Source: Macrostomum hystrix
Taxonomy: Eukaryota; Animalia; Platyhelminthes
Direction: 5' to 3'
DNA: 64,000 nucleotides
NCBI GenBank assembly: GCA_950097015.1
Contig: CATNEN010000031.1
Coordinates: 3,472,001-3,536,000 of the forward strand
Shown here: one piece after another, positions 3,001 through 23,372 of the stretch
Layout: every line of letters starts with the position of its first letter
How positions within the stretch are numbered: the stretch's first letter is position 1
Made by a program: the position numbers and the translations under genes
Notes under the pieces: generated by a model
The model's database searches: none
The model's input: only the letters and a program-made list of their open reading frames with translations
Told to the model about the DNA's origin: nothing

Positions 3001-6000
3001 GTCTGACAGCGGAGGCAAAGTTCAGCAGAGCCTTAAAGTGCTGGATGAGGCGCGGCAGCTCCTCGGGGATGTCAGCGGTTGGCTGATCGTACAGGTAGCA
3101 GATGTGTCGGCAAAGATTGGTGAGCAGGACGCCAAGGGACGAGCTTTGAGGCGACGTGCCCAGAAGGCGGAAGATCACGTTTGGCTCCGTTGACTTCTGC
3201 CACTGCCAGATCTGCAGGCGAAGGATTTGTGCGTGGTAGAGTTAATTGAGCTCATCAATTATCGAAGAAACTGACTACTCAGAAAGTAGGCAGGCTAGGA
3301 TTGGAATGCATAGAGCAGTCATCGAACGGACTCACCAGTGTGCTAGCCTTAGCCAGCAGGGAGGTCTTGCCGCAGCCAGGGTCCCCGTGCAGCACAAACA
3401 GCTGTCTATTGCGTGAGTCCTGGCAGTAGGTCTCAATCTGCTTCAGCTCCGTCTCCCTGCCCTGGAAGACCTGTTCAAATTGTTGCGGCACATTTTTGGT
3501 ATGCGCGATGGCTGATACATGACTTTTCTCTTCTGTAGCGTACTTCGAGCTAGCAGTATCTCAAACAAATAAGGACCATCAGTGGCAGCAGTCGTAGAAC
3601 TTCAGTGACAGCAGTGATGGAGCTTCAGTGACAGCAGTGATGGAACTTCAGTGACAGCAGTGATGGAGCTTCAGTGACAGCAGTGATGGAACTTCAGTGA
3701 CAGCAGTGATGGAACTTCAGTGACAGCAGTGATGGAGCTTCAGTGACAGCAGTGATGGAGCTTCAGTGACAGCAGTGATGGAGCTTCAGTGACAGCAGTG
3801 ATGGAGCTTCAGTGACAGCAGTGATGGAACTTCAGTGACAGCAGTGATGGAGCTTCAGTGACAGCAGTGATGGAGCTTCAGTGACAGCAGTGATGGAGCT
3901 TCAGTGACAGCAGTGATGGAACTTCAGTGACAGCAGTGATGGAACTTCAGTGACAGCAGTGATGGAGCTTCAGTGACAGCAGTGATGGAGCTTCAGTGAC
4001 AGCAGTGATGGAGCTTCCGTGACAGCAGTGATGGAGCTTCAGTGACAACAGTGATGGAGCTTCAGTGACAGCAGTGATGGAGCTTCAGTGACAGCAGTGA
4101 TAGAACTTTAGTGACAGCAGTGATAGAACTTTAGTGACAGCAGTGATAGAACTTTAGTGACAGCAGTGATAGAAGTCCAACCTCGCAGAGCTTGGCACAG
4201 ACGTGGAGGTGCTGCAGAATCTCGGACATTGTAACATCGTCCGACAGCAGGCGGTTGTACTTCATGCCCCGGTCGATGAGCTGCACCACTCTAGTATAGA
4301 AGGTGTCACAAAACTCGTCCACATAGGCTGAAACAGGGCGCGAGGTGGTGCTTGGCCTCGTTAATAATTAATTCTGTGTAGAAAATCTGCTTTCTGAGTC
4401 AGCGCAACCCTGAGCTGGCTGGCAGTGGCAAATTGCCTGGCTCAAATCACTCGCCCCACTCTCACATTCTCGTCCGCCCCAGTTGAGAATTGCAAGCTAT
4501 TGGTAAAAGAGAACTTGGGTTAGTTGAGCTTAAGTTTAGTTGAGGACTCATATGCTCTGTACACAAACCTGAGTGCTTCAACTGACAACGTTCGAGACAA
4601 TTCATATGCAATATTCAGGTCTCTGTACAGACTAAACTATTACCAAAGATATTTGATTGCTTCCTGGACTGGATCAGATTTGCGTGATTCCATCATCGAC
4701 ACACAATTTTACTGCTATATCATTGTACTAACCTACCTGAGTTCTCCCTCACTGATGCTTCATCTCAGCCAGCCTGAATCTCACCTGAGTTCTCCCTCAC
4801 TGATGCTTCATCTCAGCCAGCCTGAATCTCACCTGAGTTCTCCCTCACTGATGCTTCATCTCAGCCAGCCTGAACCTCACCTGAGTTCTCCCTCACTGAT
4901 GCTTCATCTCAGCCAGCCTGAATCTCACCTGAGTTCTCCCTCACTGATGCTTCATCTCAGCCAGCCTGAATCTCACCTGAGTTCTCCCTCACTGATGCTT
5001 CATCTCAGCCAGCCTGAATCTCACCTGAGTTCTCCCTCACTGATGCTTCATCTCAGCCAGCCTGAATCTCACCTGAGTTCTCCCTCACTGATGCTTCATC
5101 TCAGCCAGCCTGAACCTCACCTGAGTTCTCCCTAAAGTTCATGAAGCGACTCAAAGTCGGGGTCAGGCTCACCCCGATGAGTGTCCAGGTGAATACCGGC
5201 GGGGTCCACCCAGGGCTGTTTGTAGCGAACAATCGACGATGCCCTCAGCTTGCTGGGTATTTTAACGTCGCGCAGATTGTCCATGAGGTCCTGAGCCTCC
5301 TGGTCCACCTCCGTGCCGTTCATGTCGATGAAGTTGCGTGCCACCCGCCAGTTGGACAGAGTGATGCCCTCCAGGTGCCGCAGGAAGGCCAGCGTGTGCC
5401 GGCTGTTGTTCGGCGCCGTCAGAATGCCGTGAATGTTCTCGCGCTCGGTCACTGTTAATAGTCACGTGATTAGGAAGAACTCATTGGTGATTGCACGGCT
5501 GCTCATTTGGTAATGGTGGATAATAAAATAATAATAATAATAATTGATAACACCTGCCCTAATTGAGTCTGATGTGCAGTAGACAGCACCTTCACGAACT
5601 TCAAGTCGTGAGTCGGACGCTCCACTAGGCTACAGAAATAGTAGAGCTACTCATGACAACTGTACAGCTCATTGTTAAGCTTCGATTCAAATCTCAGACA
5701 ATGCCCTCTCAGTTGAGCAGTGCCCAGGCCATTGTTCCGTTTTCTACATCAAATTATTAGAAGCAGAATAGTTCGCTGTCTGCTTTGTTATAAACTGTAA
5801 AAAGTATTTTTCTTGCTGGAAGTCACGCAGCACATCATCGACGTCACAGCTGCAGTGAGTTGAAAGTTTTCAACGAATCTTCAACGAAGTAAAAAATGCA
5901 AAATTTTTCTTACAAACTCTTCAAATCTGTTTGCAATAGAAATACAGATTTTTTGTACTTTTGAGCCGGCAATTGTGAGCAATCCTTCACATGTCGCTAA

Positions 6001-9000
6001 CTGGCTGCAGTCAGCTAAGAGGCCCCAAGTACAGTTTTTAGCAGCACATTTAAATATAGGTATACTGCGTGACTTCGGTGGAGTCATTGATGCGGAAGAA
6101 CCCAATTTCGTCTCGGTACCTATTTTAAGTTAGCAAACTGGCAGAAGCGTTAACTGAGCAGAACTTTGACTGCGATCAACTCAGTCTGTTTGCGCTTCAG
6201 CAGTACAAACCTTGTCTTGCTTTGTTTGCCAAACTATAAAAAAGCACTAAAACGACTTCCTGAGCCTGTGCTGGAGTCAGTGATGAATGCTTTAAACAAT
6301 GGACAGCTTTTGTTACATTGTTGCAAGATATGAAAATATAGCTAAAAGCTTTAAAATGATACATATAATTAGTCAAGAATTATTTGCGTTTCGCTTAACC
6401 ATTAAAACTATTTGTAAAAAAATTCAGCGCTAATTTCTAGATCCTTTTAGCATTTTCATGATTAAGCGCGCGCCCGACCACTAGTGCAAGATCTATTTTT
6501 AGACATTTTCATGATTAAGCGCGCGCCCGACCACTAGTGCAAGATCTATTTTTAGACATTTTCATGATTAAGCGCGCGCCCGACCACTAGTGCAAGATCT
6601 ATTTTTAGACATTTTCATGATTAAGCGCGCGCCCGACCACTAGTGCAAGATCTATTTTTAGACATTTTCATGATTAAGCGCGCGCTCATCCACTGTGCAA
6701 GTTCTATTTTTAGACATTTTCATGATTAAGCGCGCGGTCATCCACTGCGCAAGTTCTATTTTTACACATTTTCATGATTAAGCGCGCGCCCGACCACTAG
6801 TGCAAGATCTATTTTTATACATTTTCATGATTAATCGCGTGCTCATCCACTGTGCAAGATTTTTTTTCTAGACATTTTCATGATTAAACACACGCTCGTC
6901 CACTTGTGTTAGATCTATCTTAAGGAATTTTCATGATTAAACACGCGCTCATCTACTAGTACAATGTCTAAAAGTACAAGCGCACCTACTCACCCGACAT
7001 GAAATAGTTGTGCCGCTGGTCGGCGTCGATTTTCTGCTCCTGAAATAGCCGGTCAGTTGCCTGGCGGAAGATCAGCTGCATCTTGCCCATTGTTGCCCAC
7101 CATTCGTTCTGGTGAGCTTCCATCATTTTTTGCATACCCTGCAAAACAATGGCATAGCAGAATCATTGCAGGTTGGATTTCCTACCAAAAGCGCTCACTA
7201 GCATCGAGATGAAATGTCATAATAAGCTATTTTTATAGCTGCAAATCAAACTCCCACTAACTTCCGCGGACCCATTTAGCACAGAGTGCATTTTCAGTCG
7301 GTAGTTGGTATAGGAAAGAAAAATTGCCACAGCTGCTATAAAATTTGCCACTAGATTAAACTTTGTAAACAGGCGGGGGCGTTCTCAATCTTTGTGTTAA
7401 ATAATAGGGCAGAATAAAGCAGGGAAAATATGGGGGATTCTCAACCAAATTCCATGCTTTTCCTTAAAAAATCGCAGTTTAAATTTTTTAAAGAGAGAAA
7501 AAGTACTTTTTGTGCGAGCAAAGTGAAATCGTTTTTCTAGCTTTTACTAGTGCTTTAGCAAAAATGTGCATCTTTATTGCTGAACAGAAATCTAATAATG
7601 AAAACAAACTTGCTTGTATTTTTCTTTTTTAGGCGTTTAGAAAAAATTAGAGTAACAATTCACTACATTCTCACTTTGTCCTGAAATGAAGACAAGAAAG
7701 GTGTATTAACAAAAATTATGTGTTAGTGAAGCCCTAAAATTTGACCGGATTATTTTTTAGGCGCAGCTAATATATACCACGAAGCTTTTGAAAACTTTCA
7801 ATCAGATTGAGGTTTCCTCAGATCTATAAATAGCTCCGGAGTTTCCTCAGATCTATAAATAGCTCCGGAGTTTCCTCAGATCTATAAATAGCTCCGTAGT
7901 TTCCTCAGATCTATAAATAGCTCCGGATTTTCCTCAGATCTATAAATACGAGCTCGTAGCTCAGGGGTTTCCTTAGATATATAAAATAGCTATGTGGTTT
8001 CCTCATATCGAAATATAGATCGTGGTTTCCTCAGAATTGAGGTTTCCGCATATATATATATAAGTAGCTAGAGGGTTCTCCGAGTTTAAACTAGCAAATA
8101 CTTTTATCGCAGAGGTGAAAAGCACTAGGTATTCATTTATCTATGCATAGCAACTAGGCTAGGACTGATTATAAAATATAGATTCGGTTGAAAAACTGCA
8201 GGTTTAAATAAAGTGATTGTAGGTCAAGAGGTTAAGTTAGAAAATAAATTTTCTGGTTATACAAGCAAAGCAATTCAGAAATATCAATAGCTAAACAAGA
8301 AGGAAGTGTCTTGTTCTTGTATGTTCGACCATTTGTTAACGCAAGAAATGCAACTGTGCTAACTGGCGCAGTAGGGTTATGAGGGCGTATCTGCGGCTAT
8401 TCCTCAATTTTGTGTGCTTTTAGCTCTAAGATACAACTACTATAATATATTACGTATTCTAGGAGCTTAGTTCTAAAAGTCGATCTGGGTTAACAGTAGA
8501 ACTACCAAGCGGGGGATTTCCCCCTGACCATTTTTGCTGCACCCGAACTGAGCAACGCAATCACACGAAACTCAAGAGCACGGCCAACTTTTTGTTACGC
8601 AACTTGTGAAACAATAATCAAGTCACCAGCTCTTCAGACCATCGAGAAATTGAATGTTTTTAGGTGAAGGCCCGATTTTTCCCGTAAGCGCTAGTGTCTT
8701 TCATACACCCCTATACAAAAATTAGCACTGAGCCTCAGTGCGGCCTTGCAAGGCCTTCAAAATTTATCAGCATGCCACCCGAATGTGCCTGCATCATCTC
8801 CGGTCACCTACCTTTATCTAGACGCACTGATGGACCTTTAAGGGCTACAACAGGTGGAACTTGGCCACTATGGACACCCTGACGCGAATTTCTCCGATTT
8901 CGCTGATCAAGCCTAAATATTAGACGCAGCTCAACCACAGAACACCCTTGCCTAGTCTGTCAACCAATCTGTCAACCAATCAGACACCACCCAAAGCTGT

Positions 9001-10850
9001 TAGCATTCGAGCGCTGCCAAAAAGATTTTCAGGAGGAGAAATTCTCCCCCCTCGGTACAACAACGGGCGGCAAAATGGCTTGGTAGTCCTACTGTTAGTG
9101 TCGTCCATTTGATCCCAGGCGTGGTAGTTCTGTACTGTTAAGAGTCGTAATGCCCACTGCAGGACGATGAGAAGTCGTCGGGGCAAAGTGTAAACTTTTG
9201 TACATGTCCTGTGTGCGTGTTTTGGATGCAAAATGTGTGGCGACGTCGGAAATGTCTTACCTTGTTGTTGAAATGGATCAGTATCGACGAAATCGGCTGT
9301 AACACCTGCACTGGCGGGACCAGGTTCTCGTCCTTTTTGTACCAGCGCTCCAGGTAGCCGGCATCTTCGGCTGTGCCGTGCTGGCGCACCGCGTCCAGGA
9401 TCATGTCGAACTCGGCCGCGTCAATCAGTGTCGGAAATGGCCTATAGCCGTACTTCTGGCCCAGCAGTACCACGAAGTTGGGGCCGACGCTCACCCGTTG
9501 GCAGGTGCTGATCTCTTTTAGGCACAGGTGGGTCGTCATGTGGTCGTCTGTGGCTTCGTCTCGGACACCCCAGCGCATGTCCACCACCTGACGGCGTTTG
9601 AGTTGCTACTGATTTTATAGTTCTGCATTCAATATTGCCATACTAAAGAGATTCTGCCCTGTCTTCACTTCACAATCGCTGACACCGATTTCCTCAGTAG
9701 TTATTTGGTCTGACACCTTACAGCTTACAATCATTGCTGTTGGTATCACATTCGTCCCCTCACTAAATACCTGAAATTCCAGTCCGTGTTGCTCCCTGCA
9801 GTACTCCTTGATCTTGGGATAAATTCGCTCCATGAGGGAGTTGCGCTCGACACCCGTATCTGTAAGTAGCACGAAAGAAAATGTACCATTTATTTTATTG
9901 ATAACAAGTTCTAAAACAGCAGAATTCCGCAGAGGAACCAATAGGCTAGTGAACTGCGCGCTTCATTCATACCAGTAAATGTTGAGCTGGTGAAAATGCG
10001 CACAATCTTGCTAGGCATTGTTGGAAGATTCTCTAGGAGGCCGCGAAAGATTTTGTCCACCACCGTATGACAACCGCGACTCAGTGGGCCTTCCAGAATC
10101 TCCGGCTCCGGATCCTCCTCCTCCGGGTCCTCCTTAACATCTGCTTCATCGTCTTCCGTTGGAGAGTAATCAGCCTCTTCACCTCTAGCAGCCAGAGTCG
10201 CCTCGGCCCCTTCCATCTCTGTGGCTGCAGCATCTGCCCCGGTTGCGTTGGCAGCATCTGGCGTTCCGCCACCACTGCCGCCACCGCCGGCCCCTCCAGC
10301 AGGCACCCGCACCACAACCTGCTGCCGGACCACCGGGGCTTGGCGAATCGGTGCGGTCGCCGGTTGGGTCTCCTCGCCGCCAGCTGCAACAGTGGTCGCT
10401 ACTCCTGCAGCTGAAGCTGTACCGTCTAGTTGCGACCGATTCGATGATGCCACCGAGTGTCGAGAGGCCGCTGAAGCGGCTGATGCCACCTGCTGTTGCC
10501 GCTTTCGTTGCTGCTGCTGCTGCTGACGTTGCTGACGTTGTTGCTGGTGGTGTTGCTGTCGCGATTGACGGATCAGCTGTCTGGTCGCCACTGTCTCAGC
10601 CGTAGACGCCATCGACGCTGGTGTCGCGGACATGGTTGGAGGCATGTCCTCAGAGCGAGTCGGACTCTGTGATAAGAGCTGCCGCTGCTGCTGAGGCAAC
10701 TCAGCATCCGAAAATGAGGCTTCTTCGTCTTCATCATCGTCGCGGCGTCTTTGTCCAGCGAGGTTGGTAGCGGCTCCAGCCGCTGGCGAAAGTCGGCGAC
10801 GATGCTGCGTTTGCTGCTTCTGCTGATGCTTTTCTTTTGACTTGCGCCCC
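1..10850 (-). CDS. NWD2: NACHT and WD40 repeat protein (NWD2/NWD1-like), core exons; 3' end lies beyond the window's left edge
   Basis: Phase-consistent GT-AG exons 10850-9973, 9859-9771, 9587-9261, 7138-6994, 5451-5173, 4327-4182, 3470-3336, 3211-<1. They encode VRIFTSSTFTDTGVERNSLM, VVDMRWGVRDEATDDHMTT, HNYFMSVTERE, Walker A LHGDPGCGKT, Walker B LVLFLDSLEE and WD40-type repeats (SSMDKTIKVWNF). The last exon appears open for 3.2 kb; it is absent from the ORF track because it has no stop in the window. Confidence 0.92.
3590..4175. repeat. 23-bp minisatellite (CTTCAGTGACAGCAGTGATGGAG), about 25 copies, in an NWD2-like intron
   Basis: Tandem units visible directly; the array begins about 7 nt after the donor at 4181. 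Confidence 0.95.
4733..5132. repeat. 48-bp minisatellite, about 8 copies, in an NWD2-like intron
   Basis: Unit ACCTGAGTTCTCCCTCACTGATGCTTCATCTCAGCCAGCCTGAATCTC; it accounts for the 16-aa periodic ORF 4524-5135. Confidence 0.95.
6445..6968. repeat. 53-bp minisatellite, about 10 copies, degenerate toward the exon
   Basis: Unit ATTTTCATGATTAAGCGCGCGCCCGACCACTAGTGCAAGATCTATTTTTAGAC. Confidence 0.93.
7812..7990. repeat. About 29-bp tandem repeat, 5-6 copies
   Basis: Unit GTTTCCTCAGATCTATAAATAGCTCCGGA, decaying to the right. Confidence 0.85.
8494..9094 (+). mobile_element. Non-autonomous TIR DNA transposon (MITE), family A, copy 1
   Basis: Termini CAGTAGAACTACCAAGC ... GCTTGGTAGTCCTACTG (17-bp TIR, one mismatch), flanked by TTAA / TTAG. 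The internal sequence matches 24068-24617 and 29131-29450. Confidence 0.85.
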
Positions 10851-10955
10851 CTATTTAATTTTGTGAATTGAATGTCAATAGATTTGTCACGTTTTTAAGT
10901 GCAAAACAAAATAAACGCGATTTAATATTTAACAGAATCTTGATATGGAACGTAC

Positions 10956-13675
10956 CTCTCTCTCGACAACATGGAGTTCGATTCCGGACCGGCGTCCTCA
11001 TTTTGAGACAAATCGTTATTGTCGGAAGCTAAATCAGCAGCTTCGCTGTCCGGTGTCGCAACTGCCGTATGTGGCGCTGGACTAACCTTGCGACGCTCCT
11101 CAACTTCCTCAAGGCCCTCTGGCGTCTGATTGGAGTGCTGCGTCTTTCTTGACTGAGTTTTTCGACTGACTCGATCTACAGATTCAACGTTTTCTATTCG
11201 CTTCTCTGATCGCTCTGACTTTTCTGTTCGACGACGCTCTGATCGGTCGTGTCGCTCTGGTCGATTTTCGCGAGTTCTCTCCGATCGATTTGCTTGATCA
11301 GTTCGATCTAGTCGATCTCGCTCTGGTCGATCCTCACGAGTTCTCTCTGGTCGATCCTCACGAGTTCTCTCTGGTCGATCCTCACGAGTTCTCTCTGGTC
11401 GATCCTCACGAGTTTTCTCTGGTCGATCCTCACGAGTTCTCTCTGGTCGATCCTCACGAGTTCTCTCTGGTCGATCCTCACGAGTTCTCTCTGGTCGATC
11501 CTCACGAGTTCTCTCTGGTCGATCCTCACGAGTTCTCTCTGGTCGATCTTCGCGAGTTCTCTCTGGTCGATCCTCACGAGTTCTCTCTGGTCGATCCTCA
11601 CGAGTTCTCTCTGGTCGATCTTCGCGAGTTCTCACTGGTCGATCTTCGCGAGTTCTCTCTGGTCGATCTTCGCGAGTTCTCTCTGGTCGATCTTCGCGAG
11701 TTCTCTCTGGTCGATCTTCGCGAGTTCTCTCTGCTCGATCCTCACGAGTCCTCTCTGGTCGATCTTCGCGAGTTCTCTCTGCTCGATCCTCACGAGTCCT
11801 CTCTGGTCGATCTTCGTGAGTCCTCTCTGATCGATCCGGTCGATATTCGCGAGCTTTCTCTGATCGATTTTCGTGTGTTCTCTCTGGCCGATCCAATCGA
11901 TTTGGTTGATCTAGTCGATCTTGCACTGGACGGTCTTTGCGAGTTCGCTCTGATTTATTTTGTCGATCTGGTCTATCTGGTCGATCTGGTCTATCTGGTC
12001 GATCTGGTCTATCTGGTCGATCTATTCGATCTGATCGATCTAGTCTATCTGGTCGATCTCGATCTCGATCAAAACTGTCTAGTTGATCTTGTATTTCGAG
12101 CCGATCTTTGCGATCTCCCTTTGATCGATCTGGTCGCTCTCCTGGTCTCCTTGTTCTTTCTGATCGATCTGTTCGATCTTGATCAGTTCGTTTAATTCCG
12201 TCTGATTGATCTCGACTTTGTGATCTGTCGTGTCGCTCTGGCCGACTCTGCTGCTCCAATCGATCGTGCCGCTCTGGTCTACCTTGCAATTCCGATTGAT
12301 CAGTTGTTTCTGCTCTCCTCGATAGCTCTTTATCAACCTTAAATATCTTTGCTCGGCCTATCGACTCCAGTTCCGCATGGTCATGTCGTCGTCGCTTTCC
12401 GGAACTTTGTCGCGACTGCCTCTCTCTGTGCAAAGCCACGTCTCTCTCCTCAGCCTCAGCCTCCGCTGAATCCGCTCGCGACTCTCCCGACTCGTCGATA
12501 TCGGACTGCTTGCGTTGATTTGTCCGGGAAGTCGGCGGCAGCACTGGGAACGCACCGCGGCGCAGGTTAAGACTCTCCACGGAGCCAGCCTGGCGCACTG
12601 GGCGACCCTCTGTGGCGTTTAAGTTCGGCACGCTGCGGTAGCTTCGGCCTCCTAGCCGGCTCGAGTCAGCCGCATCACTTCCAAGATTCGGTCTGGCCGC
12701 GGATGCGTCGCTGAGAACCCCTCGATCTTCTTCGTCCTCACTGAACGCCTCGTCATCATCTGAAGCAGTTCTACCAGACGAGAACGAGGGAGACGACGAA
12801 CGTCGCCGACGGATCTGCTCCTCGTCCTCCTGGCATTCCTGCAGCTCCTCCACCCGATGCTGGCGGTGCTTCTGCAGTTGGTGCAGCTGGCGCTGCCGCT
12901 GATACTTCTGGTAGGCCTCTTGCTCAGCCAACTGACTGCCGATGCTGCGCAGGACGCGCTTGGTTCGCTCGTCAGATGCCTCGGCATTGTCCAACGCTGG
13001 TAGACGGTACTTGGCCGCCGCCTTGCCATACGGGTTCTGCGCCGCTGTTGGCTTCTGCTTCTGCTTCCTGATTGTCAGCTGCTGCTGCTGCCGCGGTGTA
13101 GTGCCCGGGAAGTGCTGAACAAGCGAGAAGTCCGACGCCTGCATTGGATTCAGTGCATTCAGCGCCTTTGAAAAGCTTGGCTGCAGCGAGCGCACCCCAA
13201 GCCCGATGGCCCCAGTTGCTGATTCGATCGGAAGGGCTCCGAAGGTGGCGGTACCGATCGGTCCACCGATCGCCGGTCTATGCTTCAGTGCAGCCGCCTG
13301 ACCGACTGGCACGAAAGCTACGTCTCCTGGCTTCAGCATCGACTTGGCGGCGGCCTCTTGACCACCGCCCGCGATGCGAACGTCGAACTGCTTGCCGGAG
13401 AACACAACGAGGACGTCTGTATCCCTCCCTGTGACTCCCGGGTGAAGGTCGCCAATGCCGACTGCGCCAACTGGCGCGTTGCCCTCGCTGTAATGCAGAG
13501 CTGAAGGTGCCGATGCGCTGCCTCCGCCGCCGCCATCGAAACATCCGCCTTCGAGTCGCTTCTTGGCCCGTTCGATGATCTCGCGCTCGAATTGCGGTCC
13601 AGCCACGGGGATGAGGTTGGTCTTCTTCACCGTCACTGCAACCAAGCGGTGGCCGTGGCCCCGTGGACAGGTCAT
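10956..13675 (-). CDS. Large low-complexity 5' exon (about 907 aa), probably the N-terminus of the NWD2-like protein: cupin-like domain, Q/R/S-rich region, (REDRPERT)n
   Basis: ORF 10922-13684, first ATG at 13675. Phase-2 donor AG|GTACGT at 10955 matches phase-2 acceptor TAG|G at 10851 across a 105-nt AT-rich intron, reading ..SRE-R-GRKSKEK.. into the open NWD2 frame. Confidence 0.72.
11320..11830 (-). repeat. Coding 24-bp tandem repeat encoding (REDRPERT)n, about 21 copies
   Basis: Plus-strand units GAGTTCTCTCTGGTCGATCCTCAC and GAGTTCTCTCTGGTCGATCTTCGC, in frame in the 920-aa ORF. Confidence 0.92.
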
Positions 13676-16600
13676 GCCTTCCAACTTTCAGCTATAGGCT
13701 GTTCTCTCTCTCACTGGCTCCATTTTCTTTTTTACCGTTCAAAAGTTCTACGTGTAAGCTAAAGACTGCCGGACCAATCACCAGTGAAACCCTCTCCCTA
13801 CTCCTGCGTCTCCATCACAGACGCCGACTTTCTCCATAGCTCTCTGTTTGTACTTTGCTTGCCCGCCTCACTCTCTACTGCCTCACTTCACTTGACTTCA
13901 CTTGACTCAAGTTAAACTGCTAGCAACACTGCTAGCCAATGAGGCTTGGATCTTGGACTGAGGCACTCTGAATTGGCCTTTTGTTTCTAAACAGAAATCA
14001 CCATTGATTGGCAGTCGCCAAAACGCCCTCTCTCTCTTTCCCAGTGTCCTCTACCCTTGGTTTCCTCTTCGGCAAAAATGACATGCTTGAAAGCAGCACC
14101 GTGTGCTTGTCATCCATTCTTCTCCTTTCTCTCTCTATAGCTATCTTTGCCCTTCCTTTTTCTGTTCAGTTTCCATGCCTTGGAGACTGGCTCTAAGTTC
14201 TGGCTCTACATAGCAACAGTCCCAGCCTGCTGACACATTGTTAGTTTTTCTTGCCAAATTGTCTCCAGAGCCGCTTCGGTTAAGCCACTACAATTTTTGT
14301 TCTATTGCTTGTAACGCACTGAAGAGGCCTTTGTGCTCCTGGATTTCTCTGTTACAACAGTCTTCTGTGTTACGGCAAGCTAAACTGCTTTACTGTAGCA
14401 AGCTTTCTAGGCCTTTTATTATATACACGGGAGCAATATTATTTCGAATAGCATCACGAGTTGTGAATGACAAATAAAAAACTATGATTCATTCTAGATC
14501 TCATATCTACCCAATTCAAAATCCATCAATAAGAATGTTCTAGGTCTCATACCGTACTAAAAGCAGATGTCATCAATTTTTGGTCCGAATTCTAACAACA
14601 AGCTTTTTGTAAAGACAAAACAACATACAAAAGTACATTGAAAATACAGGTTTGTCTCTCACCCGGAGGCGGCATGCCACTGATGGAGACCTTCCACAGG
14701 CTCTTTGTCTGCGGCCTGGCTTTTGGTCCCATTTCCATCAGGCGCCTGAAGAAAAAAATATTCGCGTTAATAGTTCGCAATCACTCGTATCCTTTTAGAA
14801 GAATTCCAGCAGTAGTGCTACTAAAAGTAATAAGCATATCCAACGGAAATATTGAGTAAAATATAGGTATCATGTCAATTGACTTCTCTGGTGTTATAAT
14901 ATGATAATATGATACTACTAATACTAAACAATTTAAATAAAAATAATCAAACTACCTCAAAAAATTGTTTAAGTAGCATTTGTTTAAATGCTCCGACTGT
15001 GGTTATAACAAATTAAAACAGAAGCAGCGAAGCTCTTCAAATTTTCCACACCAAACATCAATTCTTTTCACTGAAATAAAAAAAAATCTAAACAAATATT
15101 TACAAAATTCACCGCAAAATATCATAGATAGAGAAGTGAGTGCATGCTGCACTGCCTACTAACAGCAGTATCTTAGTGTGGCAAAGATACGACAGCTATG
15201 AAAATGTAACCAAAACTAAATGGCTATCGTATAAAATATCTACCTGCTGAGAAATTGGCTAAAACGGCGAGCAATGAGACGATAACTTTAGTCAGAAACT
15301 TTTTGCGACTAAACTGATATGTTATTGATCATCCATTCTAGCCCTGTTTGCCAAGTTGAGTTCGCAAATGTTACAATTTGTTTGCACTAATTGCACACTA
15401 GACTTTGCTCTATGTGTAAACCAACTGTTTGCTAATTGATTCCGTAAGGTTTGGCAATCTTATTAGTGATTGTGACTTTTAAAATCCAAAAAGGCAACAG
15501 AAAGACCCCGTCGCGACAAAATTTGTTTTGGAAAATGGGCTATCGCGGTAAAACAATTTTCTCTAGTCCTCATTTCAGTTCTCATGCAAGGAATTTCCTA
15601 AACCATTAAAGGACGTTTTCATCGTTTCGCTCATATAAATGAATTAAAAGAGACTGCATGCATAGGCAAAGTTAGTTCAGTGCCTTCACAAATCTAATCG
15701 ATAATTTGAAGACGTCGCAACCGTTTTCAAAAGCTTTTGTTTTGTTTTTAGTTTGTTATAATGTCCACCATAAATGTTTCGTTAAATAATAGTTTATTTT
15801 AAGTTATCTGGTTTGTAATAAATATTGCGTTATACGTACATATATTTTTTAGGATATGTTTATAAAACAAATATTTTTATTGCTATTATATAAATGTACG
15901 AGTGAGTAAAATTACGTAATTGTTATCAAATCAAACTTTTTATACCGAAAGTAAAAGAAATAGAAAAATAATGGCTGCGTTAAATTGAATTTATTAACTT
16001 TTATTAAAGAATATTAATATATTATAGAAATATTATTAGTATATATATATTACATGTTATTAGTAAATAAAATAATTGTTTTTTTTATTTTGACTTTTTG
16101 TTTAATTTTAAAGACAATACTAAACATTTTGAATTCGGTTGAGATTTTAGCAAGTCAGGTTTGTGTCTTAAATGGTATTGGTCCTATCCCGCTGTTATTT
16201 TTATCCGGTATCATCTAGGTCTCTAGCATTCCTTGGTCTAGGAGTCCATGCATGCGAAACGTCGGCACCCGAACCCCGTCCAATCTAATCGCTATTGACA
16301 ATGTCGCCACAGATGAAGTCAGCCAATTTAATTGGCAAACTTCCGGCCATATGCGCATGGCCTGTCTGCGTTCGCCTGGTCGGTTCCCGCCAGATGCAAA
16401 AACAATACAAAAAACGATAAAAAAAGGCCACTGATAACAATAGAGAAGACTCTGCTGTGCTCAAATCCAAGCAGTTGTGACAGACTGCTCTTTGACTAAG
16501 ACCTAAGAATGACTATCGCTCGTGACATTAAGGCTTTTGAAGCGGGCTACACACACAGAGAAAGATAGTAAAAATTCTATTCGCTATCGGCCGAGTGTAA

Positions 16601-17165: not shown

Positions 17166-18174
17166 ACACGGCAGTAAATTGTACCGTTGACCATATTTTC
17201 GTCAAGGTGTGGTTTGCAGGCCAGTCTAGCTATTCTTACCTGGAGACGCTGCGGCCTTTGTAAACTGCAAAGTTAACGGAATAAAAATGGAAGCGAAGCC
17301 TGTCAGTTTGCACGTCTACTTTGCTATGATTCTGGAATTAAGTCAATGACGAGTTTTGCTCAAAGATAATATTTTTTCCTGTACTACTTTTTTATCGACT
17401 GACCGTCGAGAGTTGACAACTACCGGATGCAAGAGGCGAGAGGTACGGGGATTATGTGGAAAGCAACAGGTACTTAAACTGGGCACCTCATGTTTCTCAT
17501 CACTCCTCCGCTGAGTTCTAAAAGGAAATGAGTGAGTAGCTAATAAAGTCTGCAGAGAAAAGGGAGAAATTGTGAAGAGAAAAATGCTAATGCTGGGATG
17601 CTGGCACAACAGAACTTAGACTAGGAGGGAAGAGGAAGGAGACAGGGGATCTGAGTAGGCTCAACTCCCAAGCTAGCTATGGGTGTTTGAAATATTTACT
17701 AACCAGTTGTTGTCTTCTCTAAAGCCCCGGGCCTTAGCGACAAGACCAACGCCTGGCAGTTGGATTGCATGTCGCCCCTGCCCTTATTGACCAGACATTT
17801 TGCCATAGACTGTGTTCTTTTTTTCAATTATTCCATCTCCAAATGCACTTCTAGCAATAGGGCGACAATTCTTGATCTCTAGGAGAAGACATCAGTCCTT
17901 AGCAACCAGTTTTATAAATGAATGTGGCTTCACTCGTTTCTCATTATTTCCTGTTCAAATGAATTCATTGACGTTTGTATTACAGATCAGTCCAAACGAT
18001 GTGTGTGTACGATTCGTGATTTTGCATAGGCAATTCCGTCTTTGAAAACTTTACAAATACGGAAAAGATGGATCTTCTCATGGAGATGGATCTTACAGCA
18101 GTCAATCTCAATACTCAAGACAACGCTTATTTGAGGTAGAGTTACACATACAAACTTGCTAACAGTAATTGATT

Positions 18175-18470
18175 ACAGCCAGCTTACAGCCAGCTTACAG
18201 CCAGCTTACAGCCAGCTTACAGCCAGCTTACAGCCAGCTTACAGCCAGCTTACAAGCCAGCTTACAGCCAGCTTACAGCCAGCTTACAGCCAGCTTACAG
18301 CCAGCTTACAGCCAGCTTACAGCCAGCTTACAAGCCAGCTTACAGCCAGCTTACAGCCAGCTTACAGCCAGCTTACAGCCAGCTTACAGCCAGCTTACAG
18401 CCAGCTTACAGCCAGCTTACAAGCCAGCTTACAGCCAGCTTACAGCCAGCTTACAGCCAGCTTACAGCCA
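18175..18470. repeat. 11-bp minisatellite (CAGCCAGCTTA), about 26 copies with occasional 12-bp variants
   Basis: Tandem units visible directly. Confidence 0.95.
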
Positions 18471-19499: not shown

Positions 19500-20412
19500 A
19501 CAAGCCTCATCTATCAATCCACATCCATCAATAAATCCACATCCATCTGGCAATCCTCCATTCATCTATCAATCCTCCATCGATCAATCAAACATCCATC
19601 CATCTATCAACTCTCCATCCATCAATCAATCCTCCATCCATCAATCAATCCTCCATCCATCAATCAATCCTCCATCCATCAATCAATCCTCCATACATCT
19701 ATCAATCCATCATCCATCAACCAATCCTCAATCCATCAATCAATCCTTCATCCATCAATCAATCCTCCATCCATCAATCAATCCTCCATCCATCTATCAA
19801 TCCACCATCTATCAATCAATCCTCCACCCATCTATCAAGCCTCCATCCATCAATCAACCCTCCATCCATCAATCAACCCTCCATCCATCAATCGACCCTC
19901 CATCCATCTGTTAAGCATTCATCCATCTATCAATCCCCACCCATCTATCAATCCTCCATCCATCTGTCAATCGTCCATCCATCTATCAATCCTCCATCCA
20001 TCTATCAATCCTCCATCCATCTGTCAATCATCCATCTACCAATCATCCATCCATCTATCAAACATCCATCAATCCAAACAATCCAAACAATCCATTCATC
20101 TATCAAACATCCACCCATCTATCAAACATCCACCCATCTATCAAACATCCACCCATCTATCAAACATCCACCCATCTATCAAACATCCACCCATCTATCA
20201 AACATCCACCCATCTATCAAACATCCACCCATCTATCAAACATCCACCCATCTATCAAACATCCACCCATCTATCAAACATCCACCCATCTATCAAACAT
20301 CCACCCATCTATCAAACATCCACCCATCTGTCAGACATCCACCCATCTATCAAACATCCACCCATCTATCAAACATCCATCCATCTATCAAACATCCACC
20401 CATCTATCAATG
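19500..20412. repeat. CCAT/ATCA low-complexity satellite that resolves into a 19-bp unit (CCACCCATCTATCAAACAT)
   Basis: Degenerate tetramer repeats on the left and homogeneous 19-mers from about 20100; it accounts for ORF 19488-20444. Confidence 0.9.
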
Positions 20413-22020: not shown

Positions 22021-23372
22021 TTAGTTAAGCACGGTTGTAGCAGCCGGCCCTGGGCTCGCCAGCATTGCTAGGCCAGCCTTGCCACCGTTCATCACCCCGT
22101 TGCCCCCGACGGCGGCAGCTGCAGCGCTGGCGGCCGCAGCTGCTGCAGCAGCGGCGGCGGATGAAGCTGGTTTTGGACTGCCAGACGATTTAAATGACAC
22201 CTGAAGGGTTCGGTTGCCAACTGTGTAGCCATTAAGCGACTGAATAGATAATAGGGCCTCTTCGTAGTTGCTCATCGTGACAAAGCCGAAGCCGCGGCAC
22301 TTGCTCGTGCTGGGATCCCTGATAACCTTGACGGTCTGAACAGCGCCAAACGGACCAAATAGTTCCCAGAGGATGCGGTCCTCCGTCTCAGGAGCCAGGT
22401 TATAGACGAAGATGCACCAGCCGCCACTGGGTGTCATGCCACCGTTCTGAGCGACCACCGTTTGAGCCAGTAGGGCATGGTTCTGAATGCCGCCAGTGCT
22501 TGACATGAGGTCACCTATGCCGCCTATGCCGTTGCTGACGTGGTGGCCCTGGTAAGATTTGATATAGTTTCGGGACAGAGCAGCCAGCTGCTGAATCGGG
22601 CTGGAGATTTTGGAGGCGGCGGCGGCGGCAGCCGGTGATGGCATGTTGCACTGCTTGAGAAAACTGTTCACCAGATTGCCACCCTCCTGCCTGGTCGCAC
22701 TGGGACTGTTGGCGAACTTCACCGTGATGGCTTCGGCGCCCTCCTCCGGCTCGAATCCATTCAAACGTTTAATGGCGTCCTCGGCCTCGCTGCGTTGATC
22801 GAAGCGGATAAAAGCGACGCCACGCGACAAGCCAGTCTTGTTGTCGTACAGAATGCGCAGAGTGATGATCTTGCCGCACTGGTTGAACATTCGCTCCAGC
22901 TCGTCCTGCGTCATCTTCTTGGGCAGGCCGCAGATGTACAGATTGGCGCCTTTGATGGCCTCGGAGCTGGGGCGGGCCAGCGACACTTTGATTGTCTTGT
23001 TCTGCAGCCGCAGCCCGTTTAGCGTCTTGATGGCCTTGTCGGCTTCCTTCGGTTGCATATACTTGACGAAAGCGTAGCCGAGGCTCTCTCCAGTGGCGCG
23101 GTCGCGCACAAGTTTACAGCTCTCGACCTCGCCGATGCTAGTGAAGAGGGCACGCACATCCTCCTGAGACATAGCCGGTGGCAGGTAGTTCACTATGAGG
23201 TTGGTGCGGTTCTCTGTGGTTTCGAAAGGGTGTGTTTCCGTGCGTACATTTGAAATTTTGAATGCTATACAATTGAAAATTATTACAACTCTAGTGAAGT
23301 AAACTCACCATTGTCGGTGATGCCACAGGAGGAGTTGTTGGTGTCCTTTCCCAGCATGTCGCTAGATGTCAT
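22021..23372 (-). CDS. elav: ELAV/Hu family RNA-binding protein (3 RRMs)
   Basis: Exons 23372-23309 and 23213-22021 (phase 1). Encodes RTNLIVNYLP, LGYAFVKY, KTIKVSLARPSS, ANLYICGLPK, RGVAFIRFD, GWCIFVYNLAPE and CRGFGFVTMSNYEEA. Confidence 0.96.

Follow-up and report, generated by a model that had tools for sequence, protein, structure and literature searches.

NWD2 is conserved across animals, and more than 100 NWD2 proteins from molluscs, arthropods and other groups are 1,650-1,750 amino acids (aa) long. In the protein of Lingula anatina (1,704 aa), for example, a DUF4062 region is followed by NACHT, an NWD1-type winged helix and the NWD2 C-terminal propeller. In STAND NTPases, the N-terminal part usually dictates output, and Apaf-1, the NLRs and the fungal NWD/HET-type proteins carry a lineage-specific module N-terminal to the NTPase switch. 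Here, we analyzed a stretch of 64,000 nucleotides (nt) from the flatworm Macrostomum hystrix (contig CATNEN010000031.1, positions 3,472,001 to 3,536,000; hereafter, the window), in which a long open reading frame (ORF) stands directly upstream of an NWD2 gene. We consider it likely, judging from the sequence, that this ORF is spliced in frame onto NWD2 as a huge 5′ coding exon, an arrangement that would by analogy place a lineage-specific module ahead of the NTPase switch here too.

An upstream reading frame probably joined to NWD2

We rebuilt the exon model from GT/AG sites and two homologues. All features of this locus lie on the minus strand of the window, and a slash marks exon-intron boundaries throughout:

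13675-10956, minus strand: exon 1 (ORF1), 2,720 nt, 906 codons and 2 nt, from the ATG at 13675 to a phase-2 donor, AG/GTACGT
10955-10851, minus strand: gap read as intron 1, 105 nt, GTACGT...AAATAG, 26.7% G+C
10850-9973, minus strand: exon 2, 878 nt, a conserved low-complexity extension of 263 codons and then the start of DUF4062 (KIVRIFTSSTFT), with the donor ACTG/GTATGA
9859-9771, minus strand: exon 3, 89 nt
9587-9261, minus strand: exon 4, 327 nt
7138-6994, minus strand: exon 5, 145 nt
5451-5173, minus strand: exon 6, 279 nt
4327-4182, minus strand: exon 7, 146 nt
3470-3336, minus strand: exon 8, 135 nt
3211-1, minus strand: exon 9, 3,211 nt
9859-1, minus strand: exons 3-9 taken together, the NWD2 exons with DUF4062, the NACHT P-loop, the NWD1-type winged helix and the WD40/NWD2 C-terminal propeller

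The nine exons, with GT..AG introns between all of them, total 7,930 nt and form an uninterrupted frame of 2,643 codons. An earlier note on this DNA, made from the sequence alone, had counted the same 7,930 nt (more than 2,640 aa), and our independently built model arrived at that sum. The gene continues past the window start, where ∼195 residues lie outside; the product would thus have 2,643 residues within the window and ∼2,840 in all.

By its sequence, the downstream part is truly orthologous to NWD2 and comes from a Macrostomum flatworm. Residues 1171-2643 of the spliced protein are collinear with residues 46-1512 of Lingula NWD2 (46.6% identity over 1,486 aligned columns), and the alignment is unbroken over Lingula residues 46-215, where DUF4062 (PF13271) is recorded. 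This domain is spread over exons 2-4, and its exon-4 piece, taken by itself, reaches 18.8 bits against a Pfam cut-off of 24.7. In the last exon, Beta-prop_NWD2_C (PF23586) scores 221.5 bits (cut-off 33, E = 2.2e-65) in a match that ends with the window, and HTH_NWD1 (PF25469) scores 52 bits (cut-off 27, E = 8e-14). The exon-9 piece alone gives NACHT 24.4 bits, just below the cut-off of 26.7; AAA_16 scores 32.9 bits (cut-off 32.6), and the Walker A motif GDPGCGKT is encoded in exon 8.

What sets the locus apart is its N-terminus. Other animal NWD2 proteins have ∼45 residues ahead of the position that matches residue 1171 here, in line with the earlier note’s statement that animal NWD2 begins near DUF4062. 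In the spliced protein of the window, the NWD2 match begins only after 1,170 residues, a surplus of ∼1,125 over Lingula that is close to the ∼1,200 extra residues first claimed, and these 1,170 residues have no relative outside Macrostomum. If the splice is used, the protein therefore departs from the usual NWD2 trait of a start near DUF4062 and a total of ∼1,700 aa. This long N-terminus concerns the architecture of the protein and leaves its orthology to NWD2 untouched.

The upstream ORF (10922-13684) encodes 920 aa from a TTG and 917 aa from its first ATG at 13675, with an in-frame TGA at 13690-13688; an exact look-up of the 917-aa product found no record. Its donor, GAG AG/GTACGT, has its last exon base at 10956 and sits 31 bases ahead of the ORF stop (33 nt in the earlier note, whose description of this donor, the AT-rich gap and the in-frame phase-2 junction we otherwise reproduced). 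Read on without splicing, the frame runs for 11 further codons past the donor to the TAA at 10924-10922. The acceptor ahead of 10850, TTAAATAG/G, is also in phase 2, and the first base of exon 2 completes the codon. The spliced junction reads ...NSMLSRER/GRKSKEK..., and exons 1 and 2 together give 1,199 codons without a stop, up to the donor at 9973/9972. The earliest ATG in exon 2 lies at 10645-10643, as had been claimed.

In the arrangement that we favor, the 105-nt gap would be removed by ordinary cis-splicing between the donor after 10956 and the acceptor before 10850. Introns near intron 1 measure 113, 183 and 124 nt, and off-consensus donors occur elsewhere in the NWD2 gene too (GTATGA, GTATTT and GTTGGA). 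An alternative donor at 11087, AAG/GTTAGT, is in phase 0 and was rejected as incompatible with the acceptor.

Comparison with Macrostomum lignano

The best match to the last exon is Macrostomum lignano PAA71014.1, with 93% aa identity. We compared the window with the locus of this protein (NIVC01001189.1, here L001) and with two further copies, L002 and L004, each 92-98% identical to L001. This diverged locus supplies the decisive evidence on the splice. Window and M. lignano can be aligned in exons only. Nucleotide identity is 70.5% over the 5′ 1.3 kb of ORF1, 67% in exon 2 and 82-91% in the NWD2 exons, and synonymous sites are near saturation (synonymous divergence, dS, from 0.95 to >2). The loci are probably orthologues from two species, and they could also be an old pair of paralogues.

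ORF1 is open in L001 and L002 (719 and 698 codons), where it begins MSCPRGHGHRLVAVTVKK.... It ends in GGC/GTAAGT (GGG/GTAAGT in L004), again in phase 2, and the TAA within this donor is the sole stop of ORF1. The intron is 608 or 755 nt long, filled with a 21-nt tandem array, and it closes with the phase-2 acceptor ctgcag/G. The homologous junction lies here:

L001 5250^5859: splice junction homologous to that between exons 1 and 2 of the window

The M. lignano spliced frame is open for 1,011 or 988 codons. Moreover, the ORF1 donor is kept in four copies; the C-terminal 57 aligned codons of ORF1 are only 33% identical, yet the phase-2 donor stands at the aligned position. Should the intron be retained, an ORF-only product would stop at the donor’s TAA in M. 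lignano or 11 codons later in the window. Because M. lignano repeats the phase-2 donor, the phase-2 acceptor and the open spliced frame at a locus with synonymous sites near saturation, chance is an unlikely explanation of the junction features.

The stretch between the acceptor and the exon-2 ATG aligns as protein with one frame kept (QQKQ..RRRLSPA..DDxxDE..QQRQLLSQSP), and over the 68 codons ahead of the ATG, the proportion of nonsynonymous differences is 0.275 vs. 0.647 for synonymous ones (pN and pS, window vs. M. lignano). When the DNA of the first 85 exon-2 codons was aligned with no reference to frame, the only gaps were of 9, 12, 6 and 6 nt, all multiples of three, and the substitution rates at first, second and third codon positions were 0.25, 0.18 and 0.51. 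The window’s two methionine codons in exon 2 (EDMPPTM) correspond to EEQAPTV in M. lignano, so that the start ATG is not conserved. From the protein alignment, the pN and pS values, the gap lengths, the third-position excess and the EEQAPTV segment, this stretch appears to be translated in the frame delivered by ORF1, with no conserved start of its own. ORF1 and the NWD2 exon thus behave as a single coding unit in two Macrostomum lineages, with conserved phases and coding-type evolution, which supports the one-gene reading of the earlier note. The splice of ORF1 to NWD2 is very probably real and, if so, predates the split of these two lineages.

Public M. lignano models of the gene (PAA71014.1 and others, 499-1,500 aa) represent the same family member with the same exon structure:

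L001 10001-16796: BOX15_Mlig015065g2
L002 10001-19898: BOX15_Mlig015065g4
L003 745-8765: BOX15_Mlig015065g6
L004 10001-11500: BOX15_Mlig015065g1

They start at the exon equal to exon 5 of the window (7138-6994) and lack the DUF4062 exons, exon 2 and ORF1; the omitted exons are intact on the same contigs.

RNA evidence and alternative readings

RNA data came from the only two runs found to contain this DNA, small runs of one study (X1 and X2), of unstated kind, whose contigs were placed on 8990-11320, clear of a 517-nt tandem array in ORF1. The contig pieces sit on exons. One halts at the exon-4 donor and goes on for 22-41 letters that do not fit the intron; the runs therefore contain spliced RNA of the NWD2 gene. 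Contigs cover 11077-11320, in the 3′ part of ORF1, and 9985-10713, with one spanning 10313-10713, so that transcripts include at least 68 nt of exon 2 ahead of its ATG. No contig falls in the 105-nt gap, a pattern that counts in favor of the splice. The earlier note had proposed reads across 10956/10850 as a check; both flanking exons are covered by contigs, and the junction itself is neither shown nor refuted. Two further features of these data were recorded. In both runs, the contig on the 3′ part of ORF1 breaks off without overhang at 11077 or 11079, and the next 121 exonic bases are without depth. X2 has depth 4 in the bin 9848-9925, which is mostly intron between exons 2 and 3 and may reflect unspliced RNA or an unrelated look-alike.

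Several observations weigh against a junction of ORF1 with exon 2, in addition to those given below with the alternatives that they favor. No RNA contig joins 10956 to 10850 in X1 or X2, depth being zero over 10862-11076, and coverage holes of this kind prove nothing; the zero-depth stretch also takes in 121 nt that are exonic under every model. The public M. lignano annotation omits ORF1 altogether. Furthermore, an in-frame ATG stands 31 nt upstream of the M. lignano acceptor, inside the intron, and the window lacks it.

The alternatives begin with the DNA upstream of ORF1, where we found the following:

18570-18542, minus strand: candidate first coding exon, ATG ACC CTT ... CAC G/gtaata, phase 1, which fits the phase of micro-exon A; proposed from the window only
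17264-17240, minus strand (L001 254-278): micro-exon A, 25 nt, tttgcag/...CCAG/gtaaga, phase-2 donor
15258-15244, minus strand (L001 1589-1603): micro-exon B, 15 nt, ttttag/...CAG/gtagat, phase-2 donor
14745-14663, minus strand (L001 1946-2028): micro-exon C, 83 nt, cttcag/...CCGG/gtgaga, phase-1 donor
14015-14000, minus strand (L001 2794-2809; L002 2123-2138): 16-nt CCAAT block, ACTGCCAATCAATGGT, identical in otherwise unalignable DNA

The peptide of micro-exon C, RRLMEMGPKARPQTKSLWKVSISGMPPP, is identical to that of L001, and its nucleotide differences are all synonymous. Chained, A, B and C give the same 40 residues in the window and L001, and 16 of 16 nucleotide differences are synonymous. 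As a candidate paralogue of the NWD2 N-terminal segment, the micro-exon peptide was rejected, its alignment being no better than shuffles (p ∼0.1). With three conserved coding micro-exons upstream of ORF1, the start and the set of isoforms are uncertain, and the ATG at 13675 may be neither the true start nor the only one. A join from C to ORF1 would use catag/TGCTCATG in M. lignano. In the window, only a third AG, a weak one at 13679/78, keeps the frame; tatag, the homologous acceptor, is out of frame and runs into a TGA that overlaps the ORF1 ATG. Similarity to M. lignano begins exactly at that ATG, which counts against continuous reading from upstream into ORF1. The 16-mer precedes the ORF1 ATG by 286-325 nt and was matched with E = 2e-4 when 1 kb of each locus was compared; its conservation suggests a promoter of ORF1’s own.

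These features leave room, at rather low probability, for a single transcription unit that would run from ∼18.6 kb to past the window start and combine phase-matched 5′ modules (A-C), ORF1 and exon 2 in different ways. It would yield NWD2 isoforms with or without a fast-evolving, charged repeat tract of ∼900 residues and a constrained orphan head. By phase, C could instead join exon 3 or an unconserved terminal exon, and A or B could join exon 2 in frame, bypassing ORF1.

It is less probable still that micro-exon A or B is the usual splice partner of exon 2, with ORF1 as an optional cassette, as an alternative first exon under a separate promoter or as a gene nested in the intron between them, and with the 2,840-residue form minor or absent. 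The coding nature of A, B and C, their complete aa identity with M. lignano, the phases that permit B to join exon 2 and C to join exon 3, the conserved CCAAT 16-mer and the onset of similarity at the ORF1 ATG would all suit this route. However, the phase match of A and that of B each had a one-in-three chance of arising, and a donor of ORF1 that is conserved although the neighboring codons are so poorly kept would be hard to explain if it were unused. In the window, a nested gene would, in addition, have no more than 70 nt for its 3′ end.

The least probable alternative, which we regard as quite unlikely, is an operon-like pair. In such a pair, the ORF1 mRNA would end at the TAA at 10922 and be polyadenylated in the gap, and NWD2 would be trans-spliced to a spliced leader (SL) at 10850 and start at the ATG at 10645 or at the conserved methionine of PASMAS ∼11 codons on. 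In Macrostomum, transcripts often receive by trans-splicing a 35-nt leader whose last three bases are ATG, SL-resolved operon spacers of M. lignano peak near 100 bp, acceptors that lack an upstream cis donor are trans-spliced, and the trans-splice acceptor motif is [T/C]TNCAG (Ustyantsev and Berezikov 2021, PMC8629364). Frequent trans-splicing and spacers of ∼100 bp give this reading a real prior probability. As in SL-resolved operons, the two coding blocks lie on the same strand at ∼100-nt spacing with an AG acceptor before the second, and the gap of 105 nt matches the modal operon spacing. Poly(A)-signal-like hexamers stand in the gap (ATTAAA in the window; in L001, AATAAA ∼100 nt ahead of the acceptor), the acceptor of M. 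lignano agrees with the trans-splice motif, and the want of a junction contig in X1 and X2 would be expected.

Unlike the genes of SL operons, however, the downstream block here has no conserved start, encodes protein from the acceptor onward and does not share the frame of the leader AUG. A leader ATG joined at 10850 would open a 39-codon out-of-frame ORF, and the M. lignano acceptor behaves likewise by phase. The 68 codons ahead of the exon-2 ATG evolve as coding sequence in a frame compatible with ORF1, and that ATG has no counterpart in M. lignano. Moreover, a conserved cis donor stands upstream of the acceptor, and in M. lignano it supplies the sole stop of ORF1. We thus retain the in-frame splice of ORF1 onto NWD2 as the favored explanation; its use in vivo, the long form as the main isoform and any function are what we infer.

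Beyond the micro-exons, an ELAV/Hu-like gene with three RRMs (22024-23304, minus strand; one open stretch of 427 codons) lies immediately upstream of the NWD2 unit, and its closest relatives are Macrostomum sequences with 89% and 83% identity. Tandem arrays in introns and intergenic DNA occupy 18170-18470, 6445-6948 and 4735-5133, with units of 11 nt (GCTGGCTGTAA), 53 nt and 48 nt, respectively. A block of ∼900 nt (19500-20400) has an extreme skew of C over G on the plus strand.

The proposed N-terminal extension and its meaning

The spliced product would be a three-part protein: a constrained head of 285 residues; ∼885 charged, repeat-rich and probably disordered residues; and a complete NWD2 body with DUF4062, NACHT, winged helix and WD40 propellers. 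Two features of the extension are set out here:

13675-12821, minus strand: conserved head, residues 1-285, ending in a long helix (231-284) predicted with confidence
11837-11321, minus strand: in-frame tandem array REDRPERT, 24 nt x 21.5 copies

The head has 80% identity to both M. lignano copies, and its ratio of nonsynonymous to synonymous divergence (dN/dS) vs. L001 is 0.12; for residues 286-470, the ratio is 0.11. Conserved islands follow the head, such as LGGRSYRSVP..RPVRQAGSVESLNLRR.AFPVLPPTS. Residues 286-1170 (885 residues) are 45% charged and 10% hydrophobic. At the place of the 24-nt array, M. lignano carries an array of 18 nt x 25.8 copies (DRPDRS), both unit lengths being multiples of three.

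The earlier note had seen in this region a new folded domain, which our searches and models did not bear out. Over its N-terminal 215-285 residues, the head has no match to Pfam, to Atlas features or to PDB profiles; a word search among proteins of 504-1,605 aa was blank, and a full HMMER search of 1.84 billion representatives returned two matches, both repeat-driven chance. AlphaFold2 models of the head reached a predicted local distance difference test score (pLDDT) of 33 alone and 41 with a 3-row alignment, and only helix 231-284 was confident. A cupin at 13280-13650 was considered and is not supported, with no Pfam or PDB-profile match at E <= 1 and an unconfident AlphaFold2 model; a distant fold is possible.

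By analogy with other STAND NTPases, the N-terminal part could be the output or regulatory end of the protein, and the long charged repeat tract could serve as a tether or a multivalent interaction region. Unlike known STAND effector modules, the extension contains no CARD, PYD, TIR, HET or similar domain by Pfam and consists mostly of the charged repeat tract.

The lineage-specific front end of 1,170 residues, if joined as proposed, shows that the NWD2 N-terminus can be rebuilt. Within it, the head and islands are under purifying selection (dN/dS ∼0.1), and the repeat array has been replaced between lineages, with 24-nt units in one and 18-nt units in the other. For M. lignano, the comparison indicates that public models of the NWD2 gene are 5′-truncated by more than 1,300 codons. 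If the isoform reading were true, alternative splicing at this locus would exchange the N-terminal output end of an animal STAND sensor. Macrostomum serves as a transgenic model, and the extension can therefore be deleted or tagged in the animal itself.

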